A stretch of 64,000 nt of DNA from Fimbriosthenelais zetlandica (Eukaryota), in contig OZ365109.1 of NCBI GenBank assembly GCA_977030845.1, forward strand, positions 15,562,001-15,626,000. The letters are read 5' to 3'. Below are positions 3,301 to 61,400 of this stretch, one piece after another. Under the pieces are notes generated by a model. That model did no database searches. It was not told the origin of the DNA and saw only the letters and a list, made by a program, of their open reading frames with translations. The position numbers and the translations under genes are program-made. Numbering within the stretch: position 1 is the stretch's first letter; each line of letters starts with the position of its first letter.

Positions 3301-6300
3301 TATAGCCCAGACAGAGCATCTTCGTTCTCGCTAATCTTTTTCACTCAGCCGGTTTAAGTATCGATATTCCAACCCCACTCCATCGATCACTATTGATCTG
3401 CCCACCAATTCAAAACCATCATTTTCAATTTCCAAGGAACAACAATCAGCCGGAAATAGAAACGCTTTCCGTGACTTCCGACTATTCATCAAATTCCTTT
3501 CCCATATCATCAGGACCATATGACCAATTGTATGAAATTTCATACTAAAGCCAGGACTCCACTGCTGCGATTTTGTTTGCGACTCTACTGCGACAAAGGT
3601 GTTGCTTGTGTCGCAATAAAAATTATAAATTTTAAGTGTGCAAGGCTTTGACACCATTTTCCCCTGGTACATATTTCGTTAGGACACAAGCATCACCTTT
3701 GTCGCAATTGTGTCGCAAGCAAAATCGCAGCAGTGGAGTACAGGCCTTACATGGGCAGGTACTACTTTCTAGAAGCATTCTTAATAGAAACACATAACAT
3801 GCCCAAGGTGTTAATTATTCAATCCCCCATTACGCCAACACATATAGGTTAGGACTCACGTGTTTTTCCTATGAGCTCGTTTAAAATGATGAGGATGTTT
3901 TGTTGTACAATGGTGTCAGCACATGTCTGAAATAGGAACGAAAGTAAGAGTTATCTATGATTTCATACTGAATATATATGCAACAGGTAGGCAATAACCT
4001 ACTCAATATCATTAAATCTGGGCGCTAACGTTATATCTTCTTTAGCCACAGTGGCTAAAGGACGATACAAAATATTTATTTTATTTTAGCCACAGGAAAT
4101 TATCGTCAGGTCAATATTCATCAGTTTAGAAAAGTACATTCAATCAATGATTAGCACAAAAATAGAAATATTTCTAATTTATTTTAACTTAGAAATGGGA
4201 AAAGTATAACGAAACATACTAAATTGAAGGCTATGAATGTAAACTTAACAAAGGTTATAAAATTATATTTAAACAAAAAGATTAATCTACAATACACACC
4301 TCCATAGTATTGAGTAGCTGATCCAAGTAGGCACTGTTTTTGAGTATGATGTCACGGTGAATTCTCTCTGCAAGAAATTCTTCATTTAATATGAATTCTT
4401 CACAAATTCATTTAATACACGAACAGAATTGGCCAGGATGCAGGTTGCGCAACTCAAAACCTCCGGATTATTTTATTATGATTATATGAAAACTATTTAA
4501 TAGCATATATGGAACCGAGTCTTTGTTATTTCACTTAAAGTCTACAATCAGTTAATTGCATAACATGCATAACCGAACAAAATATTTGAATATGAGCATA
4601 AAGAAGAACTGCAATCTTATACAATCTAATGGAATTCAATGCTAATAAATTCCAAATCTGCTAATTATTGTAGCATAGAAAATTACTCTATTTTGCGGGC
4701 TTTCCTAGTGAGGGTTCAACAAACACAAATGGTTAAATGGCTTTAATGGAGGCAACGTCAATGGTGTTTTCAAACCAGAGCAAGGCAACAACAATACAAC
4801 TACAAAGAGTTGAACGTTTTACATAGAGAATATTTTCAATAGAGTCTGTATTCATGTACTTTGTATTGTTATACGTAATCGTTTTGTATGAAAGGCATGA
4901 CTTAAATACACAGGTTGAACTTTTTTTTCCTATTTTGTAGTTGCTGCCCTTATATTACTGGCCGTGGTGCCCTTAAAACCCCAGCAATGGAAACATTTAG
5001 TACTTCACCATTCAGGGCCCTATGAGGGTTGAAAATGGCCGAGCCCTAAAAATGTTGAAATTCATATGGGGCGCCAAGTGTTACCTTTTATATTTCGTAC
5101 TTCAATTATTTATTTCGATACGAAATATTTTTTATTTTGTACCACAATTATTTAATTTTGTTTCAATTTATTTTATTTCGTCTGGAATTAAAATTCCGTG
5201 GACGGAATTTTAATTAATTTTAATTTCCGTGGAAGTAATTAATATTCCGTGGACGGAATTTTAATGAATTTTAATTCCGTGGAAGGGATTAATATTCCGT
5301 GAACGGAATTAAACTTGATTAAAATTCCGTCCACGGAATATTAATTCCTTCCACGGAATTAAAATTAATTAAAATTCCGTCCACAGAATTTTAATTCTGT
5401 AGACGGAATTAAAATTTCGTTGACGGAATTAATTAATTACGTCCACAGAATTTTAATTGTGTAGACAGAATTAAAATTTCGTTGACGGAATTAATTAATT
5501 CCGTCCACAGAATTTTAATTGTGTAGACAGAATTAAAATTTCGTTGACGGAATTAATTAATTCCGTCCACAGAATTAAAATTTCGTTGACAGAATTAATT
5601 AATTCCGTCTATTTCCTTCAACCAACATAAGGTGGCAGCACGTTCAGGGATTGTAAAACCTAGAGAAACGAAGTTGTTGTCAGAGTTGATCTGCTGTCGC
5701 CATGAGTCCTGCAACATCAAGACAACTAATAACGTTGTGTTGTCATAGCTCCCCCAGTATTGCCATGAGTTAATTAATTCCGTCAACGAAATTTTAATTC
5801 TGTGGACGGAATTAATTAATTCCGTCAACGAAATTTTAATTCCGTCTACAGAATTAAAATTCTGTGGACGGAATTTTAATTAATTTTAATTCCGTGGACG
5901 GAATTTTAATTAATTTTAATTCCGTGGAAGGAATTAATATTCCGTGGACGGAATTTTAATTAATTTTAATTCCGTCCACGGAATATTAATTCCTTCCACG
6001 GAATATTAATTAATTAAAATTCCGTCCACGGAATATTAATTCCTTCCATGGAATTAAAATTAATTAAAATTCCGTCCACGGAATTAAAATTAATTAAAAT
6101 TCCGTCCACGAAATTTTAATTGTGGTACAAAATAAAAAATATTTCGTATCGAAATAAATAATTGAAGTACGAAATATAAAAGGTAACACTTGGCGCCCCA
6201 TAAATTCAGACCCTGGTCGCTGTATTATTGTTGTCTTTCTCTGGTGTGTAAACAGTAAAATACCATTAAGCCTGGAACACACTAATACGATTCTCTATCC

Positions 6301-9300: not shown

Positions 9301-12300
9301 GTTAGGTATATATCAATAACTCCTCGAGCGGGTATTTCTTTCTTGTAGTCGGCGTTTCAACACAAACCATGAATTATTGACCTAGCGTGAGGAAGATTTT
9401 AAATCATGCCACCCACTTCAGCGATAAGGTGTTAGCAATATACGCATGTGGTGCAGCCAATCATTTTCTAAATGCATCTTTCCGACCTTAAACGAGAGTT
9501 TCGCCAGATTTAAGTACACCAACTCTCGGAGGGCCCAAAGACTGCTCTACACCCTTTTAGCTTCATTTTAAAATGGAATCTGCTTTGTGCGAATTTATAG
9601 AAGGTGCATGTGGGATACAAGTAGGAAAGGTAGAAATTGATTCTTTGCAATGTGCTTACTGAGTATCATTGCAATAGGAATATCTAATATTGCACTCTTA
9701 CCATAGTCTTTTACCTATTGATGTTCTTTCCTTCTCACTGTTCAAATGAAGTGAATACTCTCAGAAAATAATTTTAAATATGTGAAAATATATCACAGGC
9801 GCAATTAGGGCTTTTAATTTGAGTTATAACACCTTTAAATATATACCTTGGTACACTCGAATATTCTTTTTTTAAATTCTTAATGTCTGTAATTTTTTTG
9901 GACGAGGAACATACTAATTTCTAAATTAGTAATTAGACCAACTTGCGATCTGTGAAGAATGCAATTTGGTGATTCAGACTCACTCAGAATAGACCTCTGC
10001 CCAGGCAGGTGAAACAAAAAATGCCAGCTTTACGCCAAGTAGTTCGTTAACTTGGCAACTCCTCCCCTCTCATCTATTTAACCTCAACATACTTTTTTGA
10101 CCAAGATTAAACATTCCCAACGTGATAAACATGCCAACAAGAATCAATCCTGTCTCAACAGCCGTCAAAACATCAACATCAATGGTCCTATCCTCTCTCT
10201 TTTCTTATTAGACATCCAAGGATAGTACACTCTCATTCTGATCCGGATTCCTCTCCTCACCTAGGGTCCCAAACTCTCATTTTCATTCTCTCCTTCATCC
10301 GTCTCTCCCTCAACATTTTTCGTTAAATTTAAATCCATCCATCTATTCCCCTTTCCCTCCCCTCTGATTTTCCACTTCCTTGATCTTCGTTCTCTCCCTC
10401 CCACCATACCCTCCACCCCTTTCACTCACTCTCTCTGTCATTAAATGATTTGAACACTTGTTAGTAAACTTACAGATTCAGTTTTGTTCCGAAACACAAT
10501 ATTAATGACTCACATTTATGTCCAAGCTTTGTATACAACCATTGTGCATGTATTTTAAGTTTAATTTGTTTCAAGTTTTACAGGAAAAGTGAGATAGTAT
10601 AGTCTTAATTAGATAAGACACCGGTCCCTGAATGAATACCATGGGCTACACTTTTCACCTAGATCGAGAGCCGTTCAGGAGATAGTAAGGATCATTATGA
10701 TACAGTATACATGTACCTAATGTGGGGCACATGTATGTTATGTAAATAGAGGGAGTAGATAGTTAATATAGCTGTCCCGCCCTGCTGCTGGAAAATATCC
10801 CTTGTTTCACTTACATCACATTCTCCCTGGAATTGAGCGTTATTTATAAAGTGTCTGAATGTCAAGGGTCTTGAGCAGTATAACATTTCACTGAACATTT
10901 CTATTAAATATTCTTCTATAAGTTATTCTTGACAGGACCCTGGATTGGAACTTGGATGGGGGAAGAGATGGCAGTGCGAAAAAAAACAAGAGATATTTAT
11001 CATTCAGCCTTCAAATACAAACCATTTAGCAGAAATGATCGTCACTCTGTTTTTAGAAGCGCAAGACAACTATATGTTGAAAGTTCTATTTAAGGTAAAT
11101 TTAATTGGCAACAATATTGACCACATTAATGATGAGGTCGATTCAATCAAGACTTTCATGAGTGAAAATTTATATTTGACAAATATTATAAATTCTCACG
11201 ACAACCCATAACCCTTTCTGTGAAAATCAATGTCTATAAACACTATAAATATAAGGAAGGGAAAAAAATCGACCGAGTCCAATAAGTGGGTCCCTAGAAA
11301 TGGATCCACCTGGAGGAAGAATAGGATGTGCACTGTTTATTTTACTTCACTTCCTTGGCTCCATTCTTTGGCAGGTTTCATGTATTAATTTTTCAAAGGA
11401 ATGGAGCAGCTGCCTACAGTGAGGCGGCTGTGTAAGTAGTGTACATACACCTTCCAGTGTTTGTGTCTAGGAGCATACAAACTATCAATAGACCGCTCGT
11501 CCCCAAAGCTGGGATGGGGAGGAGTAGGTAGGAGGTCTTCCTCTCACAGGAGATGGGGGAGGCGTGGGGTGGGGGCGGTTGGCGGGGGGGGGGGGGGGGG
11601 GGGGGGTGGCAGCACAGGTCAGAGAGAAGCGGGGGAGGCTGAATGGAATGGAGGTTGGGAGAATGTCGCCTGAGTATATATATAATATATACATTATATT
11701 GGGCAGGTTATTATTTCTGGTTAGAGGTGTGGAGAGTTCATCGAAATTCTATAACGTAACGTGAAAAGTTGGCTTCATTCTGGACAGGATTTAAATGATC
11801 AATATGGTCTTGGACGTTGACCCCTGCCCAATACCTCAGCAATACATTTGTATTCCATTCACCGATTGATTGAATGATTTATTGATTCATATTACATCCG
11901 GAATAAACAGGAGTAATTTTTTCACCATGAAATACTGGTTTGTTGTATCAACTGCTAGAAGCCATTACCTGCCACATTTTCTCCTAAATAAATATTTTGC
12001 TCTGGCAAACATGTTACTAAATATAGCCATCATTGATCCATGTCTAATTAAATCCTGAATCAATATCAGACAAAGAGGGAAAATACAGGGAAAAACAAGT
12101 CAGTCCCGAGCTGAAAAGGTCACGTTAGTGCAATAAGATTTTCACCCCCATTTCATGTAATTTTAATGTTTTGCAACCCTATAGTTAGATAATTATAACG
12201 TAAAGAAAGGACACATGTGGAGATACAAGTAATTTTTGCAATTTCCATCGAGGAATAACCAAGCATAGAATTTCTGGAATCATAGCAAAATCAGCCTAAA

Positions 12301-14020: not shown

Positions 14021-16971
14021 AGCTCGAGTTCTATAGCATCCCTCACCTGGAAGACATATAGTAGCAGCAGCAGGAGTAAGAAGAATGCCAGAAGAGGGGG
14101 GCTAATGGCCTGGAGGAACCCAAACCACCCGCCAGAAGCTGAGCTGCAAAAACTGGGCAAACATCATATTGGCAATATCAGCCGGAAGGCCAGTCCATCA
14201 TCCCTTGCTGCCCCACCCCTCCTCACTTAATCCAGTTCTTAAAATGATCCCTTCCAGCTTATATCTTAACCTTTGGTACGATTATACATGAAACGAGAGA
14301 AAATGTCATCTATTTCGCAGGAAGTCATATACTTATGTACCTTTGTGAAAAACAAAGGTTAACAGGTATGTGTTATACTCATGGGAAATGCCAGAAAGTA
14401 TTCAACAATAAAGAGTTGAATATTATGTATTATATTGAAATAAAACTTTAAAAAAACTTTAAACCTGGCTGGTCGTTTTGAGTTTAGTATTAGTGGACCA
14501 GTAATTCCCAAATTTATGAACAATGTTGATTTTTTATGTTTATGGCAATTTTTCGAAATGATTGAGAGTGTTACGAGAGCATTTTAAGAAGAACCAATTG
14601 AACTACAGATCTGTACTGTAATTTTATTGATATAATTTATACCTCATAAACCTGTATCTATTAATTTCAGCTATAGGGTTATGATAGAAGTTCACTTCTA
14701 AACATTCCAAGATCTACGGGTGGTTGATATATTCTTAGATGCCTGACATTTCTCAAGTTACATGTTCAAACTCAAAGGATTTTTTTCAAATTCTCGCTAT
14801 GTATATAATGCATTGGTCTGATCGCACACTAGCTGCCAGTGGTACAAATCAATTTACCGAGTATACTACTTGGTGACTCAGGAATGAATTATTTCCGACT
14901 CCCAATTGGATAATTCAAAGCATGTGTCGGACCAATCATGAAACTGAAATCAGTACGGCATTAGATAACTCAATAATATTACATATTTACCAGTTAGTAT
15001 TTAGTCCTTGCGTTTTTTTTATCGATAAAAAATTCTATGCTGCTTTAGATGAATATTCAAGAGCTTAGATCGAACCTGGTAACCTTGCTATATGTACCAA
15101 AGATATAATATAGCAAGAAAGGAAATCCCAAATATCCCATAATTTCCTAAGTTTAAAGCAGAACAGATATTATCTCTGTAACCAGTTAATAATAATGCAC
15201 AAATAACCAGCACAGTCATCAGGAGTTTTTTTCTGGATCTTAATCTAGCTTAGATTAAATATTATCAGATTCATGTATGTAAGAAAATAACACTCAAAGA
15301 AAGTCAAGCGCCACTTACATTGAGGTAACACAGGTAAAGAATCATAAAGGACAGAGTTAGGTTTACAGAGCTGTCCTCACAATCCTGAGTCGTGCCTCTC
15401 CAACAGAAAAGATAATGGCTTCCAAGATAAGCAAAGAATCTGATAGGAAATATAACACAGTCCACAAACATAAACATACCATTGCATAAAAAGGCTATAC
15501 TTTCTAGGATATTTGTAAAAGCTCTCTTATTTTTTTGTACGGTATAAGAAATATCTGCATTATCTTCTGGGGTTCTAAAGAGTGCCTGTTATTTATGAGT
15601 TCCATGGGAAACATGTTTAGATATACAGAGAAATATATGTTTATGCCAACACACACTCAGACAGTCACTGGCATCTCAGGTGAAGCGGCTTGGCACAGGA
15701 CCAGCGAACACAAAATCTCACTTGTGCAAATTTTTCCCTGGAGGAAATATTCTTTTTGACTTGCCAAATGAATTGAGCCGAATCCATGATGTAACTGTAC
15801 TATATAATCAATATCTATAAATATCTGTGTGCCCAGATAAATTAGAGAGGCGCTAATTAGATATGGGCGTGGGATTAGTAGGACGAGGTGTGTGGGAGTG
15901 AGGTGGGGCGAGAACGGGGTGGGGGTGGTGCGGGAGGCAAGTATAGAGGGTTGGTTTTTGGTGGGGGTGGGGGTGGGGGTGGGGGGAGTATTTGGTGGGG
16001 AGGGGGATGGGGGTAGGTGTTGGGAGGGGTAGGGTGCGTGCATGATTGGTAGGCTAGGCTTAGGCTAAGGGTGAGCGGATTGTGTCTTTTTGGGTAGGGC
16101 AGAGGGTAAGATACCTTTCCATTTTCTTTTATTCCATGTGATTGTCTGAATGGCTAGCGTCTCCATTATAGGCCTACTCATTTATAGTCATCGGCCTATC
16201 TCTGATTCATGCCTTATTCACTACCGGTACCGTACATGACTCTGAAAACTGGTAAATGAAGTCTACATGAAATTTAAATTCATACTGGTAACCCAAACAT
16301 GAGATTAGTAACGTTGGGCGTATAAACATGAATAATGATAAACATATGCTCTACAACTATTGGCCTAGGGCCTACTACTAGAACTTTTATAGATAGATTA
16401 TCCACCCCTATTCCAGGGTGGAGCCTGTGTAACCCTTAATTATTATATAGTATAGAAGGGGCCTATCATATAGTCCAGTACTTTTATAGATGGTACCTAC
16501 CTGCCTACCGGTACTAACTACTAAAGTAGACCTCTAGTAGGCCTACCGGTAGGCCTACTACTAGGCCTAGCCCTAGGCCTCCTATAAACATAGAACTGTA
16601 GTATGCTACAGTACAGACAGTTCTATGGTACTACTATTAGACTAGTAAGATTAGTAGAGCAGAGATCTAAATGATCGCGTAAAAGTCATGTCATTTGAAA
16701 GGAACAAGTGTGCACTGACGAAAAGAAAGAGATATGTCCCCCTCTCCGATCAGAACAGCTGTAAAGCACCTTTCAGAAGTTCAGTGGAGAGGGAAAGCCT
16801 TCAACTTTACCGAGACAGGTTGGGGAGCAACGGTTGTAAACAAACGCTATTTTCCTGTTTGGAGGAGATGTGGTGGAATGCATAGCCATGATGTAAGAAA
16901 GTACAAGAATAAGTTTCTAAATTAAAAGATTCTATATCTTAGATTATGAACTATATTCATTTTAACTCACC
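13806..16971 (-). other. Putative spliced 5' UTR exons of AGTPBP1 (first exon ending 16971; 15439-15319; 14143-14047; 13908-13832)
   Basis: Minus-strand donors CAG|GTGAGT (16971), AAT|GTAAGT (15319), CAG|GTGAGG (14047) with plausible pyrimidine-AG acceptors; no transcript evidence. Confidence 0.4.
13983..14020. repeat. (CT)n microsatellite
   Basis: Direct observation. Confidence 0.95.
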
Positions 16972-50361: not shown

Positions 50362-50394
<33 letters not shown>

Positions 50395-51075: not shown

Positions 51076-51142
51076 TACCCAGCAGGCACAAGACGTCTTC
51101 ACAACTCTAGACGTTGTGAAGACGTCTTGTGCCTGCTGGGTA
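51076..51142. repeat. Perfect 30-bp inverted repeat with 7-nt loop (collapsed MITE, TA-flanked)
   Basis: TACCCAGCAGGCACAAGACGTCTTCACAAC-TCTAGAC-GTTGTGAAGACGTCTTGTGCCTGCTGGGTA. Confidence 0.9.
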
Positions 51143-52347
51143 TAGCCTTTCTCACTCTCCACTATTCCCTAATGAACGATCATTATTGCGATGTGTTACC
51201 ATACTAATACACCACGCAATAGGTTAATTATATATAGGGCTAATAAGTATTAAACCATGGAGAAAAACACAGGAGGTGATTCCCAAGTGGCAATCTAGGC
51301 CTACTAATGAGGCCTAATTGGTAGGCCTATGTTCAGACTTACTGAATTGACTATATTGTTTACTTGGATATTGATTGCACATTATTTTGATTTTTGTGGA
51401 TAGGCCCACTAGCCTACATGTATACATGTAATTATGTAGATGCTTGTGGTTTTTACAATCCTGTCTTCTTGGAATTTATGTTGGTCATAAAAATCATGCT
51501 ACATAGCTAGGACTTAATAGGCCTATAGGTGCTTTTTATTTTCATTTAAAGATCACAGATCGTCCTCCAGTTGAGATATCAATTAGCCTATAATGACTGA
51601 TCGGGCTGCTCAAAGGGGGCATTTATCAACAGGATCTCCATCCATTCTTGCAGGTTATGATCACTATGATGATCAATATTGGCCTATTAGGCCCTATCGC
51701 TCAAAATAATTTTGTTCTCATGCCATTTGTAGGTTCATTCCTTGAATCAATCCAAGGACGCGGATATGGAGAAAAGTATGGGAGAAAGGGCATACAATGT
51801 ACTTGAGTAGGCCTATAGGATGTGCATGTAGAACTACACTACATGGTCCATGATTCCATGTTGTGGATCACGTGGGGTAGCCGATGCATCTTGGGATCTT
51901 GGGATCTTGGGAAGGGATGTGAGGGCAGCTTCCTACGCACGTCGTCCGGGGGAGCAGCACGTGGGCGTCATTCATCTCTGTCCGGCTGGGTGTTTACAGC
52001 CGGCTGTGTGTGTGTGAGCTACTCCTACTTAAAGCCTCACCCCGCCCCACCAGCGAGCAGTATAGAGCAAGAGTGAGAGAAAGCAGGCCACACCCACCTT
52101 ATAATATAGACCTATAGGCCTGACACACGCGTGGCCCTCCACTAAAAGTTGGGATCTGACAAGAACAAAAGGAATAGGCCTACCCATTGATATTGTGCTA
52201 CCTCTTCCAAAATATAGGCCTAACACAAGGGTGATTTGTATTGAAAGTTGGGGAAACAGAAAGTTAAGAGTCGGAGAAAACTGTGGAAAGTTGTTGTAGT
52301 GGAAGTTAGTTTTGTATTGGAATATTCGGAGTTGCTCATATTATAGA

Positions 52348-52597
52348 ATGAACAGGCTAACAGTCACACTGGCGGCCCTGTGCCTTGCTTGGATGGCTGT
52401 GTTGGCTGTAGAAGCTTGGAGTGAGCCGTGGACAATGGATCGTAGCTCCAGAATTGGAGGATCGGCTAGATACCACTGTTGTTGCCCTAATTGCCCTGGA
52501 CGAAGGGGTTTACGGGGTTGCTTCCCCTGCAGAAACCAACAGTATTACTGCAATTGTGAAAGCTGTTCGTGTTTCCCAGAAAAACCTGTTGACACAA
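52348..52597 (+). CDS. Small secreted cysteine-rich peptide precursor, main coding exon (candidate terminal exon 54358-54392)
   Basis: MNRLTVTLAALCLAWMAVLAVEA signal peptide, then WSEPWTMDRSSRIGGSAR, then YHCCCPNCPGRRGLRGCFPCRNQQYYCNCESCSCFPEKPVDT; acceptor TTATAG| just before ATG; strong donor A|GTAAGT at 52597. Confidence 0.75.
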
Positions 52598-52718
52598 GTA
52601 AGTTTTGTAAAAGTTATAAACTCTTAATTTTGCTGGTTAAACTTTAAAACTGTCCATCGAAGATATTAAATCTATTGGTTAAAAAGTCAAAAGTTTAAAA
52701 ATATTTCTACTTGCCCAA

Positions 52719-53062
52719 CACTATACTAATTAATAATCGGTTGTGATCGGATCCGATTAGATTCGAAACGATCAAAATCGATTAAGCAAAAAAAAAACCC
52801 GATAAATTTCAAACTGTTTTTTGTCAATAATTCTTGTGTATCTTTTTCATTTTCTATGTATCAAATGACCCCTTAATCCAAACCCGACGGCCCGACCATT
52901 AAAATCATTGATCACCCAAATCACCCAAATCCACCTACCGATCGACACCCGATCCAATTGATCCGACTGAATTGGATCCGATTTCAACCCACACTTTTCA
53001 GATCCAATCGATAGTAAGCAAAAATCGGATCAGATCAAATAGGATCCTTAATCGGTACAGTG
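52719..53062. mobile_element. Non-autonomous DNA transposon remnant with CACT(A/G) termini
   Basis: Left CACTATACTAATT...GATCGGATCCGATT, right reverse complement CACTGTACCGATT...GATCTGATCCGATT; many GATCC/ATCG subterminal repeats; no TSD seen. Confidence 0.55.
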
Positions 53063-56000
53063 TGCTTTGGGCTTAAGATGTATTTATGTATTTAAGGATA
53101 AATACATTTCCAAGTGGGGTAATTATTCCTGTCAAAATATTAGAAATCGCCACTATAGCAGATTGATATTCACATTGGAAGTAGGCCTACCTTAGATTAT
53201 AATGGTCTCTTTCTGTAATTTTTAACCACTGCTAAAGCTTCATCCATTAGAACCACTATATGCATGTAGGTCTGATGAGCACCTGTGAAATCCTTTTCCC
53301 TTACTCCTGCTGCTTACTTGATTGAAGCCACATCCTTGGTTTCGTTCGTGTATCATTTTAAGCCAAGGCGCGGTTGGGCACCACCGGAAGGCTTCAGACA
53401 TCGTTTTTATAGAAAGGAAAATGTGGGGGAGGAGATGAAGCAACGTTGATTAATGTTACACCTAAACCGTCCCTCACCTATGTTTTCGTCCCTTAAAAGT
53501 CGTCTATTTTTACCCTATTTTTTTTTTTTTTAAATAGGCCTATGTAATTCCGAACTAAGATTTCTGCAAAAAAAGTTCCCCTAATTCTGAAGTATCTAGC
53601 AATCTTAAAGAACTTTTAAACCGGACAGGTATAATTGTATAATTTTTAGATCTATCAGCATATATCAGCATATATATAACATTGTGGCCCATGCCTTGCT
53701 TTATAAATATCCAAACCTTTGGACAGGTGATATTGGCAGTTCTAAATTCACCTCATTATAAAAGAAATCGCTTTTTGGATACCCGGTAGCCAAATATATA
53801 TGCTCGAGTCGTGAGGCTAAAGTCTGACCAGAACATTTTAACTGGAAAAAAATCCATAGAGAGTGGTTGGGAGGTCCAAAAAAGATTCACTTCCGGTAGA
53901 ACTTCAGGAGTTCTATGGTCTCAGGCACATTAAGCCGCCATTAGCATATGAAATTTTTGTTAGTGTATGTGCAGATTCCTCAAGGGATGTGCAATTACCT
54001 ATCAACTTCCGGGATAATGGCGCATCTCTAAGATTGAGACTATCCAGAACGTGATTAGTTTACTAAGTGTATTTCAATGTCAGTTTTCCTTTAAAGTTGC
54101 AAAGTGATATTTATGATTCTACAACTTGGTCTTTTGTAATGGGATCATGCATTATAATCATGGAATATGCAAAGGTAATCCTTCTATAATGTAGGGTCTT
54201 TTTAAAAACAAATTATCAATTAAATGATGGTACATGCAGTCATAATATTTTCCACAGAAGTTACAATGTATCACGTAGAAAGTTCTTGCGCGGAAATAAG
54301 ACCAATTTAATTCGGAATTATTGAAAATTGGCATTCATTTTGTTTTGACGTCAACAGATCTGTGGCTATCTGCATTTGCCGAGCCCCTATAATTCCTCGC
54401 TCCCGGTCTCCTGGCAAGATAGCAATGTCGTGGCAAATCACTCTTTTCAATTACTGTACAATGTCAGAGTGAGGGACTGTGAATGTTGATATACACTCGA
54501 AAACGTCAAGGAATGTAATATAGGCCTATGTTGGACCTCCTGAGAGATGCTGGACTTTAGATGGAGTATAGGCTTATATGCCATACTATGCAACATATAT
54601 TGCTTTGAACCAATTGGCTTAATTTGGTCTTTGATACTCGATCAGTCAGACCTTATATAAAGTTATATTAGGAGTCGCTAGGGGATTGATCTGTACGATA
54701 TATAGGATCCTTCCTTCAAGACAATAAGCCACACATATTGAGTTTTGTTTTATAGGAGCTGATAGTGATAGGGCACGCACACAGGGGTACTGGTGTCACA
54801 TAGCTGGGTGTGGCCATGTGCGGATATACATAAATTCGTGTTTATTCGACAAGATGGATGGTCAGATGTCACTGAAACATGCTCTTATTGAATACTTGCA
54901 TATTGATATCATGACCTGGGACGTTTCAAAAGGAAATATACTATAAGGTGGTTGTCCATTGAGATATTAAAATGATATACATATATATGTACATGCTCTT
55001 TTCGAAGTGGACACAACTCAATATGTATTGTGACTTATTGTCTTGAAGGAAGGATTGTAACAGGAGCCCGTTTCAAAACAATGATTATCATTGAAACGCA
55101 CCCCGGGACATATCAATCTAAATAATATAAAATCACATTATATTGATCAAGAGGAATTATATGGAAAGTTATACATATTAATATCATGACAAATTGTCCG
55201 CATTTCTAGATCCTCTTTACGATGCTTGTTGATAGTTGTTTTGAAGATAGTTAATGTTGATAGGAACAGGATATTATTGTCAATCCTAGAGTAGAGGGAA
55301 AGACAAATCTTTTGATTGCGTCAAGGGCGGATCGGGGGGCGGGGGTGGGGGTGTAGGGGATGTGGAGTGGTGGATGTGAAGGATCAGGACCCCCTTTTCG
55401 GCTTTTGTTATTGTGTGTGTTGGGGGGGGGGGGGGGGGGGGGGGTGGGGGTGACTAGCATTGCACAAACTTTAGCAGATGTCCCCTATACCCGGTTTTAG
55501 CCATATCCCGTATTTGCTATTCGCATTAAGTACAAGGCTCTATAGTAACTTCGAAACACGATTTTCTTTCTGTATTATAGTTTTCCTGGTAGAGGATGGG
55601 CGAATAATTCCTCTGCCATATTTTCCAACGTTTAATGCACGAGAAGTGAAAGCGCAAAGAGCCGGATTCTAGAAAATGTTCCACTCCTTATAGACGGGGG
55701 CCACCAGAAGGGGTACGAGATCTAGACGAGGTCATGAGCGGAGCTTGCTTTGAATATGATTATAATATTTATTATGGAAAATCAAATGTAACCATAAGCT
55801 TGCGGTAGAGGTCGGTAAATGATTTTCTTTATACATTTGTAGATTGGTCGTGGAAGGGTCCTAAATATACTCATTCAACTAGTCCCGTAGATATCCCATA
55901 ATAAATGGGATATATATGCAACCGGTCCTACGTTTGGACCGCTATGCATAGTGCAGGCATGACGTGAGCAAAATGTTAATCAAACCAGAGGTTATCCTAA

Positions 56001-56144
56001 TCACATAGGTAATTGTTCAATAGTAATCACACAGCATAATGTATGTAAAGCCGATTACAATATTAATGAGTACCGTGGTCTATCTTTAGGTTCTATTTAA
56101 ACGGATCAACCATGAATAATCATTGTTGCTCGTTTTAGGCCTAA

Positions 56145-56353
56145 AGTCTGATAAACACTTATCCGATTCTCCATCCATCGCCATCCGAACCCTGCTTTCC
56201 AATGGCATCTAAAGATTGAAATTTGGTCAGTAGATATCCTTAACTGTTGTAAAGGTCTGTTCAAATTGCATGCATTTGGTGTTAATAAAAATATAGTTTC
56301 GGACAACTATCGGATGGAGCCGGATAGAGAATCAGATTAGTGTGCTCCAGCCC
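56145..56353 (-). mobile_element. MITE, PIF/Harbinger-like, second copy of the 6269-6469 family
   Basis: Reverse complement matches CACACTAAT..GATTCTCTATCCGGC.CCATCCGATAG.TGTCCG; TAA on both sides. Confidence 0.8.
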
Positions 56354-57023
56354 TAATGCATCGGCACGTCTACATCATGTAGCTTCTAGAAAATTAAAAA
56401 AAAACTGATGTGGATTAGTGATTGAAGTCAGAACAGTTCTGTCAATAACTAAAAAGCATTGCACTTGTTTGATAACAGCGAAAGTTGAAACTATTACGAT
56501 CAACATACTTTCTGTGTGATTGAAGACGAAACAACAAATTGTGGATAAATAAAGTGGAAAATAATATGTGAAGTAATTTCAGATTTTAAAATGATTAGAA
56601 ATGAAAAGTTGTACATTCTATGTATTTTATTTATAAGGACTACCCATAGAATACGAATGGTATGAGAGAGTAAGTGGGAAGTAGGAATAATTGACTCACA
56701 TGAAATACATGCCCAACATTCATCATTTTATCAAAAGCAACTTGTGGCATTCGTAGTAGGCGTACAGATTATGTCTCAGCACAACACCTGCAGATGCCAG
56801 CACTGTATACCCCAGCAGCGAAATTAGAATGGCGTCCTTTCCGCCAAAGACATCTGTCATAAAATACCACATGCAGTCATGAAAATGGACCACTGTGCAC
56901 ACCTTTAGGTTGTTTTATATTACTTTGAATAATCCGTATGATTTTTGGCAGAAATATATTTCTGATCAGATTCCTTCATATCCATGGCAATATACATAAA
57001 ACAGGATTCTTTCGACGATTCAC

Positions 57024-57425
57024 TAAAGGTGCATTTTTAAGCCAAGTATCGGATGAATGGACGTGTTTTCATTAGATGAGTCTCAAGTCGCAAAAATGGA
57101 TTTTGAGTCCGAGATTCGTATAGATCAGATCACGAGCGTTCCAATGATGTCCATGGATAGCACAATTTCAAAAAAAGTAGTGACAGCAAAAACTAGAGAA
57201 AATGCCCAACTGGAAGAAATTTTGAATGGAAAACACGCACCAAGTTGAACTCTTCTCAATTCCACCTACAAAAATAGCCAAAACATTGTATACTTACTTT
57301 TAATGCGAAAATGCAATAAGAGAAACAAATAGCTTGTTCACAACGGTTTCAGGCCCGTAGCGCTGAATGACCCTGTGCGACTTTAGACTCACTTAGTGAA
57401 AACAAATCACATATTACGTCCTTTA
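57024..57425 (-). mobile_element. Interspersed repeat copy 2 (family of 1066-1447), possibly Kolobok-like
   Basis: Homology to 1066-1447; termini TAAAGG...CCTTTA; superfamily call is tentative. Confidence 0.7.
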
Positions 57426-58357
57426 CGAATGAGGCCTGTAGTTTGTATAGGAAACATCTGACGGCGAGTTTGATGGATAAGGCAATAAAGAGTGTAAACA
57501 TTAACTAGGTTCCCCCCGACTGCGAGTAGCCTTCGACACCTCTGTTACAACTTACATACAGAAAAATCCAATCTTAAAGGGAAACAGGTTTAGACTGCCC
57601 ATCCCCAACCCACCCCAATCTCCAATCCGGTCCATTATAATTACCACACATAGATTACCCAGTTATATCCACCGCATATCCACGAATGGAATATAAATTT
57701 AATGAATTGGACAATTTGATAAGATGAAGGCGCCTACTTGTGAGCCTAGTGCCCTTTATAGTGCTGCCTAACACCGGGTTGATCAGTCTTAGCACTGTCC
57801 TCTTGTTTCTGAGTGCCAAGCGAGTGAGCCAGTGGAACCATTTTTCAGTATGACCCGCACGCAGTTTGAACCGGCAAACTTCAAAGGGCACAAGCAACTC
57901 TAACCACTAAACTGCCGTTGAATAGAACGGTTAATAGTTGAGTCGACTCTCGAGAGTGAATGGGATGGGAAAATCCTCGGGCTCCACCCTTGGTTTGCCC
58001 TCCCATTCACTCTCGGGGCATACCGCCACCACTATGATTTCTCTATTTCTTGGTCAATTCTATCGCATAGAAAATACCCCACCCACCCAGCATATACCAG
58101 TCCTCCCTCCGATCCTGTAGCACCTGCTCCCATGCACCCACCCACCTTGCATTAGAAGGTACTTTTAATGATACTTGATCAATTTAATCAGGAGAATAGC
58201 ATAGGCCTATTATTAATGGCACTATAGGTAAATACGTGTACTATAAGGACAGCCATGCTTAAGCGACCCTGTAGTGTCCACCCGTGTCCCCTTCCCATGT
58301 TCCCATGGTTCATGAATAGCATCTTAATGCTCAAGACTCCAATATTTTGTCTTGCAG

Positions 58358-58441
58358 GGTCCTTCTTGCAGATGCTAATGCGCAGCGGATTCGGAGGTTC
58401 TAAGTTAAGGAGAAGTTCCATCTGGGACAGGAAATGACGAG
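58358..58441 (+). other. Candidate non-coding exon
   Basis: TTTTGTCTTGCAG| acceptor and GAG|GTAAGC donor; stops in all three frames. Confidence 0.3.
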
Positions 58442-61400
58442 GTAAGCTGTGTTCAAAATATATTTTTTTTATGCTGGGCTGGATTTTACTTATGCTTAAA
58501 GGTTGCCAATGGCATAAAGTCTATAGCAGTTGTTAAAATCCATGGGCTAACTTTCTGAAACGGAGAAAATATGTGCGTGTCTGAATACTAATTCGCACAT
58601 GTATTGGTATCATTCTAAACTTTATCGGAAATTCGGCCAAAATATGATAATGAATAGGCAAATAAAACTCTTACGGCAGATGGAATGTATTACTAGAAGT
58701 GGAGAGGAGATTTCCCATATTTTAATGACGACAATACTTAATTCGAACTAACTACACTGCCGCCATGTCGGTACTGAGATAAATGTGGTGTTTGGAGGCC
58801 TCTCGACCGATGACCGACATTATTCCGGCTTCTCAGGGGTCCTTTGCCAATCCCAATACGGACTTGATAATGGAAATGGAAGTCAAGTGGACTATTTGCC
58901 TGCTCATGCCTATGGCTCGATGCAAATAGTGGCTTAAGTGAGCAGACCATAGGCACCAAATGGAGACTAATCTCTTACTGGGCCCCTCAGCCATTCAACC
59001 AAACTAGTTAGTGCTGACCAAAAAAGGGCTTTTGCCTTCAGGAGTAATGGATGCCGTAGTTGTATGTCCCTTCAGTGCTACGCAATCTGCCCATGAAGCT
59101 CCATTTCATCTATATATAACTGGGGAAATTGGGGGAAGGATTCATACATGGACCCATCTATTAATAGATGATCTTATAAACATATATGATTTATGCCAAT
59201 ATCAAGAAAAACATATCGTTTGGTCATGTTAACGAATTACTACATACATGTACATGTATAACATCGGTCCTATTAATAATTAAGAATTAAGATGTTAGCC
59301 CATATGGTCCCCATGTCCATTATGCCTACCATTACATGGAACAACTCATCCACATTTATAAATCGTTCATCTATCGGTTATGCATGAATATATGCATAAC
59401 CGGTGCATAAATGCATATAGTATAGATAAAAGTGATGCATTCAGTCAGATTACGTCGTCTATAGCCGATCACCTCTCGCTATGTATCGAGAAAACATGGC
59501 TCCATGATGGATCATGCAGTATGCGTGTCATGCAGATCAAAAGATGTGGATGATCCATTAATTTTTCCCGTGTAGATGTCTCTGTATATCACATGTGATA
59601 ACAGAGCCAGGATTTTGAGAAAGGGGAGTTTAGTGACAAGAGGAAATTTACTATTTGAGCGACATAAAACCATCTCTGAAATGGGAAGAGGCGGGGAGAG
59701 GGGGGTGGGGAGGAGGTGTCATACAGCCTCTCCTTGATCTTCCATGGCAGATGCAGCCGTCCGAATTGAATCTTATACAGACACCTAACATAAATTTAGT
59801 CCCACTTTTTATAGCATAGCAATATCCACATATAACTCGCCTACTTCCAACTTATACAAACTTGTCTCACAGAAACAACAACCAGGTTTATGTTTTCAAC
59901 TGTCTAGCCCAGTGTTTCATTTCAAGCTGTTTTATGCCCCATTAGTGCAAAATCTTTAAACACAAACTCAAACTCATAAAGGAATTTGTCAATAGCTGTC
60001 TGACAGATTATATTAAATGGTTTCTGGATCTACTAGGATTTCCCTGGATTACTCGAGGGGAAAGTTCATATAGACTCTCAGGACAAATTAGAGGCATGCA
60101 TCTGACCAACGAGAGTAAAATTACTCTCGTTGATCTGACACTAGTATAATAGTTTGTTCTTAACAGTTACTCCGCATCATTATCCCCATCCTCATTATAT
60201 AGATTACTCCCTAATCCTGCATGGTTATCCATTGATCTCCAAGAGATCCTTGATAATGAAGCAAAATCTAAACCCATTTCATCTCTAAATGGTCTATGAT
60301 CAGCAATGGATCAGGTTTTGCCAATTTCTGAATAAGAGAGTTACTATTATTATTTATAAACCTCTGCTATTCCACCATGTAGACCTACACTATTGATTAA
60401 ACAAGTTATTAAGATCTTTAAGTGTCCTTTGCATGGGGGAATTCTCAGGTGTTGTTGCTTCAACGTCTAATAACTATCAGCAGTTCCTAACAGTTCCCAT
60501 CTAAGAAGTTCAGTCCGGGGAGGCAATAATTATTTTGATTGATGCAATTTCCAACTAACCAGAAAATAATGTATCCGACTAAATTGGTTCACGTGAAATC
60601 AATGATAACCCGACCCCTACACCGTATCTTATTGTAAAATAATCATCCAGGGCCAAGCAGTGATTTTAGCCCAGGACGCCTTTGACGGAGCTAAATCGCA
60701 TGCAAATCGGGACACAATCGTAACCGATATTGAAGGTTACCCATCCTTTATACGGATACATGAGTTGGTCCCTCGGGCTCCTGTCAGCTCCAATCCTATC
60801 TGCAGATAAGAGAATTAATTCAGTGGAGTGGAGGGACGTTTATATTCCCCGATATACTATAAGGCCTTCTGCATAGCGAGAGCTCAGTGCTTATCTGTGT
60901 CCCATAACCGTCAGCCATCAAAAGCACACAGACAGTGTTTTATTGGTTGATTTCCATTCTGATCAATCGTATCGAAATAATAATCATGACACAGGGTGAT
61001 AAATAATGGATGTACGTGGTTATCTCTCTTTGGACTCAGCATTGATAACAATGGTTGTTTATTAGTGGTGGAAATGTCTCCCTCCAAATATTATGAAGTC
61101 CAAACTGCATCCATGATAGATCTCTTCGATGGGACAAATCAATGGGTATGGTTCCACACCTGCATGAAATTTAAGATTCTGGAAACGCATTACACAAGGC
61201 GGGTTTGAGACAACCCTCGCAAATAATAAGTCTCCTAAAAGTGTCTCATCTCAGCTCAAGATAGTACAAGACCTATGAATAAAACGCTCGTAAACGTTCT
61301 TAGTACCATCTTAAGTCAGTTTTCACCATTGGTTTGACTATTATTTGCGAGAGTGTTTTTAGATGCGACAGCCGTTCTGCAATGCATCTCAAGACTCTTA

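Follow-up and report, generated by a model that had tools for sequence, protein, structure and literature searches.

A two-exon gene for a ten-cysteine, secreted-type peptide in Fimbriosthenelais zetlandica, and its unnamed relatives

What kind of gene stands behind a short reading frame that packs ten cysteines into 32 residues, and what could its product be doing? The question is raised by 64,000 nucleotides of the genome of Fimbriosthenelais zetlandica (assembly GCA_977030845.1, contig OZ365109.1, positions 15,562,001 to 15,626,000, forward strand), referred to here as the window and numbered from its first letter. Disulfide-rich peptides that are secreted count among the main sources of hormones, immune effectors and pharmacological probes, and where a cysteine framework is new, the fold and the target are usually new too. 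An earlier note on this DNA had drawn attention to such a frame, and the present analysis establishes its exon structure, places it in a family of relatives and weighs the functions that its product may have.

The gene and its two exons

The frame opened by the ATG at 52348(+) has a hydrophobic N-terminus, from which a stretch of 18 residues leads to ten cysteines within 32 residues. The hydrophobic part is itself 18 residues long and ends in V-E-A, while the stretch that follows it ends in Arg41; the cysteine framework, CCC-x2-C-x8-C-x2-C-x6-C-x-C-x2-C-x-C, occupies residues 44-75 in the translation of 52348-52599(+). The reading frame, the signal-like N-terminus and the spacing of the ten cysteines are thus present at 52348-52597(+) exactly as the earlier note had described them. 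By inspection and hydropathy, the residues at -1 and -3 of the predicted signal are small and the one at +1 is aromatic and conserved, and the segment contains a hydrophobic 12-mer with a mean Kyte-Doolittle value of 2.5. The peptide is cationic (+3 in the core and +6 in the tail), and cysteine makes up 31% of the core, with CCC, C-x-C and C-x2-C motifs.

Such a density of cysteines is no effect of composition. When all six frames are read, the core is the window's only stop-free stretch of 32 residues with at least seven cysteines, and among 200 simulated versions of the window (order-2 Markov) the maximum was eight, against the ten seen here. These tests, together with the homologues described below, exclude a chance origin of the frame. 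No paralogue was found within the 64-kb window; tblastn rows near 49.2 kb were considered as one and rejected, being weak and lying in different frames with stops.

The coding sequence continues beyond this first exon. A GTAAGT donor stands directly after base 52597 and leaves one base of the next codon, and its position and phase are the same in three related contigs, L003, L006 (in both of its copies) and L007. Every phase-1-compatible AG between 52604 and 63990 (n=411) was scored for similarity to the tails of the relatives, and the acceptor that opens exon 2 at 58358 ranks 1/411. The codon split by the resulting junction encodes Arg, as it does at that place in another relative, L004. Homologous second exons lie at 15705-15805 in L006 and at 5853-5950 in L007, each the best phase-1 candidate downstream of its donor, and the introns measure 5553 nt in L006, 4836 nt in L007 and 5760 nt in the window. 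Between L006 and L007, only exon 1, exon 2 and the extra exon 1 copy of L006 align. A tblastx comparison of L006 and L007 with the window found exon 1 alone, and a profile built from the tails of five relatives did not single out exon 2 and was non-significant against the window, the tails aligning poorly as a set. It is the pairwise scoring of phase-compatible acceptors, followed by the genomic relatives, that settles the placement of exon 2; L003 is too short to hold this exon.

The second exon encodes an amphipathic stretch, a small stretch rich in Gly and Ser, the motif L-[KR]-R and a basic C-terminus, and its dibasic site (R101-R102) lies at 58408-58413. Since exon 2 ranks first among the acceptors and is confirmed in relatives, the gene spans 52348-58437 and not 52348-54392. 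Of the splice sites claimed earlier, the donor and its phase stood, while the proposed terminal exon, 54358-54392(+), proved to be intronic, with rank 395/411 and no counterpart in the relatives. The gene is made up of 52348-52597 and 58358-58437 and encodes 109 amino acids: a signal peptide, a cysteine-rich domain, a short linker and a basic tail (Table 1).

Table 1. Positions of the gene and of the parts of its precursor, counted from the first letter of the window
Feature	Positions	Strand	Description and basis
Coding exon 1	52348..52597	+	250 nt; residues 1-83 and first base of codon 84; ORF and translation, homology
Signal-peptide-like segment	52348..52416	+	Residues 1-23; predicted cleavage after V-E-A; hydropathy, relatives, AF2
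N-terminal stretch W24-R41 of probable mature peptide	52417..52470	+	Holds conserved G-G-S-A motif; alignment
Ten-cysteine core Y42-F76	52471..52575	+	Ten Cys at 52477-52572; alignment, codon usage, AF2
Short linker P77-T83	52576..52596	+	Longer and acidic in relatives; alignments
Intron, phase 1	52598..58357	+	5760 nt; GTAAGT donor, pyrimidine-rich tract and CAG acceptor
Coding exon 2	58358..58437	+	Residues 84-109 and TGA stop (58435-58437)
AATAAA polyadenylation-signal candidate	58661..58666	+	223 nt after stop

Relatives and what they conserve

When 1.84 billion cluster representatives were scanned exhaustively with HMMER, nine matches were returned, with E from 1e-11 to 1e-4, and eight of them are true relatives. 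The ninth, P0007, a repeat protein of bacterial origin that carries chitobiase-type domains, was discarded as a false positive, since its alignment covers none of the cysteines. A word-indexed protein search gave no match with the exon 1 peptide and, with the family profile, P0013 as the only new member. A metagenome scan added L007 to the family and supplied genomic DNA for L006 and L007, and exon 1 of the window is homologous to these two contigs as well as to the eight proteins. Scans of prokaryotic genomes and of viral contigs found no relative. The eight true relatives, their cluster mates and P0013 come solely from Logan, ENA and JGI assemblies and carry neither a name nor a Pfam domain, and text searches for conserved peptide strings of the family, made in the main texts of non-subscription journals, found no paper.

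What holds this family together is the cysteine-rich core. A hydrophobic N-terminal segment is found in every member, and 12/12 members have exactly ten cysteines in a core of 29-37 residues and none elsewhere in the mature part. The family pattern reads Y-x-CCC ... C-[FY]-x-C-R-[NS]-x2-[FYH]-x-C-[ND]-C-x2-C-[SG]-C-[FY], and the window peptide carries every invariant residue. The 12 invariant residues (Y42, C44-46, C58, C61, R62, C68, C70, C73, S74 and C75, with F59 nearly so) include three that are not cysteines, namely the Tyr, the Arg and the Ser. The framework is fixed in its second half, C-x2-C-x6-C-x-C-x2-C-x-C, and varies in length and sequence from CCC to the fifth cysteine; the first C-x2-C becomes C-x5-C in P0004, P0013 and P0008. 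The most variable segment of all is the cationic loop, which has 2-11 residues of unrelated sequence among the members. This loop (GRRGLRG in the window) had been singled out as a feature of the peptide; being its least conserved part, it is not a functional signature.

At each of the 12 invariant positions the six DNA sequences compared use at least two different codons, which means that conservation acts on the protein. The family is under purifying selection: pN is 0.21 and pS 0.76 between L006 and L007, and the core remains 35-50% identical across about ten sequences with saturated synonymous sites. It is very likely that the window gene belongs to a real, conserved family of secreted-peptide genes.

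Beyond the core, the precursor is conserved unevenly. Signal segments diverge, and conservation lies in the mature core and the tail. The start M-[ND]-[KR] is common to the window peptide, P0002, P0003 and P0006, and the aromatic residue after the predicted signal cleavage is kept in almost all members. The motif G-G-S-A before Tyr-x-CCC is shared by the window and four relatives (P0004, P0013, P0008 and P0009), and the N-terminal stretch is 10 residues longer in the window than in most relatives. This stretch had been described as a spacer ending in Arg and likened to a propeptide. Since several relatives leave a gap of just 7-9 residues from the signal to CCC, and Arg41 itself is not kept, a place in the mature peptide is likelier for the stretch than a role as propeptide. 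Towards the other end, L-[KR]-R with a basic C-terminus is found in the window, L006, L007, P0004 and P0013; in P0005, P0008 and P0009 it is not clearly alignable.

The exon structure is shared as well. In the window, L006 and L007 the linker is followed by a phase-1 intron, and the basic tail is encoded by a second exon; the donor is also found in L003. Several of the database matches are gene-caller frames that run into the intron, and their common ending, S-S-K-Y, is the translated GTAAGT donor. The family shows how short two-exon peptide genes with introns of about 5 kb escape annotation, and the genomic relatives stand in protein collections only as such intron read-through frames. In L001, L002, L004 and L005 the core, an acidic linker and the basic tail lie in one ORF, and these contigs are either mRNA-derived or from intron-less lineages. 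P0006 was called through an in-frame TGA (L003:202-738) and P0008 through an in-frame TAG (L004:183-731). Given these stops, the C-terminal parts of the two proteins are artefacts, and the true end of P0008 is the TAG near L004:541.

Tandem copies occur among the relatives. L006 has two paralogous first exons on the same strand, 4.7 kb apart, at 5155-5410 (P0002-type) and 9896-10151 (P0001-type); each has a phase-1 GTAAGT donor, and a single tail exon is detectable downstream (15705-15805). The two may be alternative first exons that share one second exon. P0003 and P0010 form another tandem pair, being called at a distance of 7.4 kb on one strand of a single 30-kb ENA contig of ERZ26695794.

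It could be asked whether the copy in the window is a silent or decaying member of a family that functions elsewhere, or a chance ORF. The gene is predicted from sequence, a TATA-type box was looked for in the 450 nt upstream and not found, and the protein collections searched do not contain the protein. Against this stand two intact exons with canonical splice sites, a matching phase, a stop and an AATAAA signal, the retention of all invariant family residues, and the cysteine-density tests and homologues that exclude chance. A silent copy or a chance frame is very improbable.

Possible roles of the peptide

The framework had been called unfamiliar, and it has stayed so: a match to a characterised family was looked for with HMMER, Pfam, PDB and Foldseek, and none was found in Pfam, PDB sequences, PDB folds, named proteins or the papers searched. 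With hmmscan at E<=10, the window peptide gave only chance-level rows to DUF7156 and TMEM95 (E 0.14 and 0.8), and at E<=1 no two of the 12 members matched the same Pfam family. None of the Pfam toxin, defensin, macin, knottin, Agouti, metallothionein, EGF and TNFR families was matched. The family profile found no match among PDB sequences or in Pfam, and the window peptide found chance-level rows only among PDB sequences.

With the 12-sequence alignment, AF2 reached a pLDDT of 71 for the whole of exon 1 and 66 for its mature part, with values of about 70-85 in the core, and both models have four short strands; in the model of the whole exon the signal segment forms a helix at residues 3-24. 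Foldseek searches with these two moderate-confidence models gave nothing below E=6.8 in PDB and no agouti-type chain, so that the inhibitor-cystine-knot fold of solved agouti-type structures found no counterpart here. The top rows were EGF domains (the light chains of factors VIIa and Xa) and BCMA, at E 7-10, probability <=0.08 and TM about 0.2-0.3. EGF-like domains and TNFR-type domains such as that of BCMA are likewise small and disulfide-rich with short strands, and scores of this kind amount to no match. Taken together, the gene probably represents a new hormone-like or defence peptide family, set apart from the described families by the libraries searched.

Several known systems help to frame what such a peptide could do. 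The C-terminal domain of agouti and AgRP is a secreted signalling ligand that holds ten cysteines (five disulfides) within some 35-45 residues and shares its precursor with a basic region. The likeness lies in the combination of ten cysteines in a small domain and a basic region in one precursor. The order of parts is reversed here, with the cysteine domain first and the basic tail last, and CCC opens the domain; Pfam (E<=10) and PDB sequences and folds give no match to Agouti, so that it is the profile and fold searches that set the two apart. Prohormones of the vasopressin/oxytocin-neurophysin type combine a signal peptide, a cysteine-rich domain, dibasic sites and terminal basic residues. 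The parts of the precursor are similar, while domain order and cysteine count differ, the processing here is presumed, and the window peptide has no similarity to them in sequence or fold.

We favour the reading that the gene encodes the precursor of a secreted, disulfide-rich signalling peptide of prohormone-like kind, with a probability of about 0.5. The signal would be removed after residue 23, and the ten cysteines would form five disulfides in the secretory pathway and fold into a compact four-strand domain. Prohormones processed by convertase and carboxypeptidase commonly have a tail with a dibasic site and terminal basic residues, and by analogy the precursor may be cut at the conserved L-[KR]-R in the tail encoded by exon 2 and its terminal basic residues trimmed. 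The product would be a cysteine-rich ligand, perhaps accompanied by a short C-terminal peptide, and could act as an extracellular signal (a hormone, a neuropeptide or a cytokine-like factor). Signalling is preferred to toxin or defence because diverging signal segments accompany a constant core and tail, because non-cysteine residues are invariant, and because copy number is low, at one in 64 kb.

A role in host defence is kept in play by the positive charge, by the change from acidic to basic along the precursor and by tandem copies among relatives, and we regard it as a tentative second reading of rather low likelihood. The peptide would then be an antimicrobial precursor, cationic and secreted by epithelia or immune cells, in which the acidic linker seen in relatives neutralises the cationic parts until processing. 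Mussel myticin and mytilin and the macins are built in this way, with a signal, a compact cationic cysteine-rich peptide and an oppositely charged extension, and their genes are often tandem. The net positive core, the strongly basic tail, the acidic linker before a basic tail that relatives keep, and the tandem paralogues (the two exon 1 copies of L006, and P0003 with P0010 on one contig) would all fit. However, myticin, mytilin and macins are set apart by the Pfam searches and by a cysteine framework that goes unmatched, and the core is far more conserved here. Defence peptides evolve fast, whereas this core is more conserved than the signal and pN is far below pS; moreover, the sole strongly cationic loop is the least conserved part of the peptide, and the window holds a single copy.

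That the family is undescribed and of secreted type was borne out, as far as the libraries reach; of the roles suggested for it in the earlier note, toxin fits less well than signalling. A signal followed by a small, cysteine-dense domain is common among animal toxins, as are unmatched cysteine frameworks, and a component of a venom or a toxin delivered to prey or predators would agree with this layout and with the want of any match to a housekeeping family. Yet the core is 35-50% identical, with invariant non-cysteine residues and saturated synonymous sites in about ten sequences, there is no large multigene expansion, and no Pfam toxin family is matched even at E<=10. A toxin must accordingly be considered very doubtful.

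Metal binding deserves consideration on account of the cysteines themselves. Metallothionein-like motifs (CCC, C-x-C and C-x2-C), together with 31% cysteine, keep such a role barely in play, either as a secreted binder of Zn or Cu through thiolates or as a structural peptide that cross-links a matrix, and the papers found on the 'CCC motif' deal mostly with metal-binding proteins, such as metallothioneins and PP1 Inhibitor-3. Metallothionein is a cytosolic protein without a signal peptide. Here, on the contrary, a signal-like segment is present in all members, the cysteine count is even and fixed at ten, and residues other than cysteine (aromatic ones, Arg and Asn) are conserved; Pfam gives no metallothionein match, and the first C-x2-C turns into C-x5-C in P0004, P0013 and P0008. 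We regard a metal-binding or structural role as improbable.

Returning to the signalling peptide, the exon arrangement allows a wider proposal, which is speculative and, in our estimate, unlikely to hold in full. The peptides could be prohormones of old origin and wide distribution among animals, missed by annotation and built on a five-disulfide fold that is new, and in this family some species would combine alternative first exons for the cysteine domain, each with its own phase-1 donor, with a shared tail exon. If this were true, alternative first exons would yield different ligands with a common processing or sorting tail.

Surroundings of the gene

The window looks like animal-type nuclear DNA, with a GC content of about 39%, a non-LTR reverse-transcriptase ORF and a cluster of tRNA genes. 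A scan with Rfam found tRNAs only. Four tRNA-Trp (CCA) genes with identical Rfam scores lie in two pairs at 37255-40223 (+), just upstream of the reverse-transcriptase ORF. This ORF, of 816 residues at 40476-42926 (+), carries the reverse-transcriptase domain of a non-LTR retrotransposon, and its best relatives, at <=59% identity, are longer and have endonuclease domains that are missing from it.

The palindrome TAGGCCTA occurs in 57 copies, against about 1 expected, and is the commonest 8-mer palindrome in the window. Copies near the gene are found at 52175, 52215, 53182, 53535 and 54521, and L006 and L007 have none; since its flanks are unconserved, the palindrome is not part of a repeat family. 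A perfect inverted repeat of 30 nt with a 7-nt spacer is located at 51076-51142, 1.2 kb upstream of the start codon, and two runs of about 29 G on the plus strand lie upstream of exon 1 (50364-50392) and in the intron (55422-55450).
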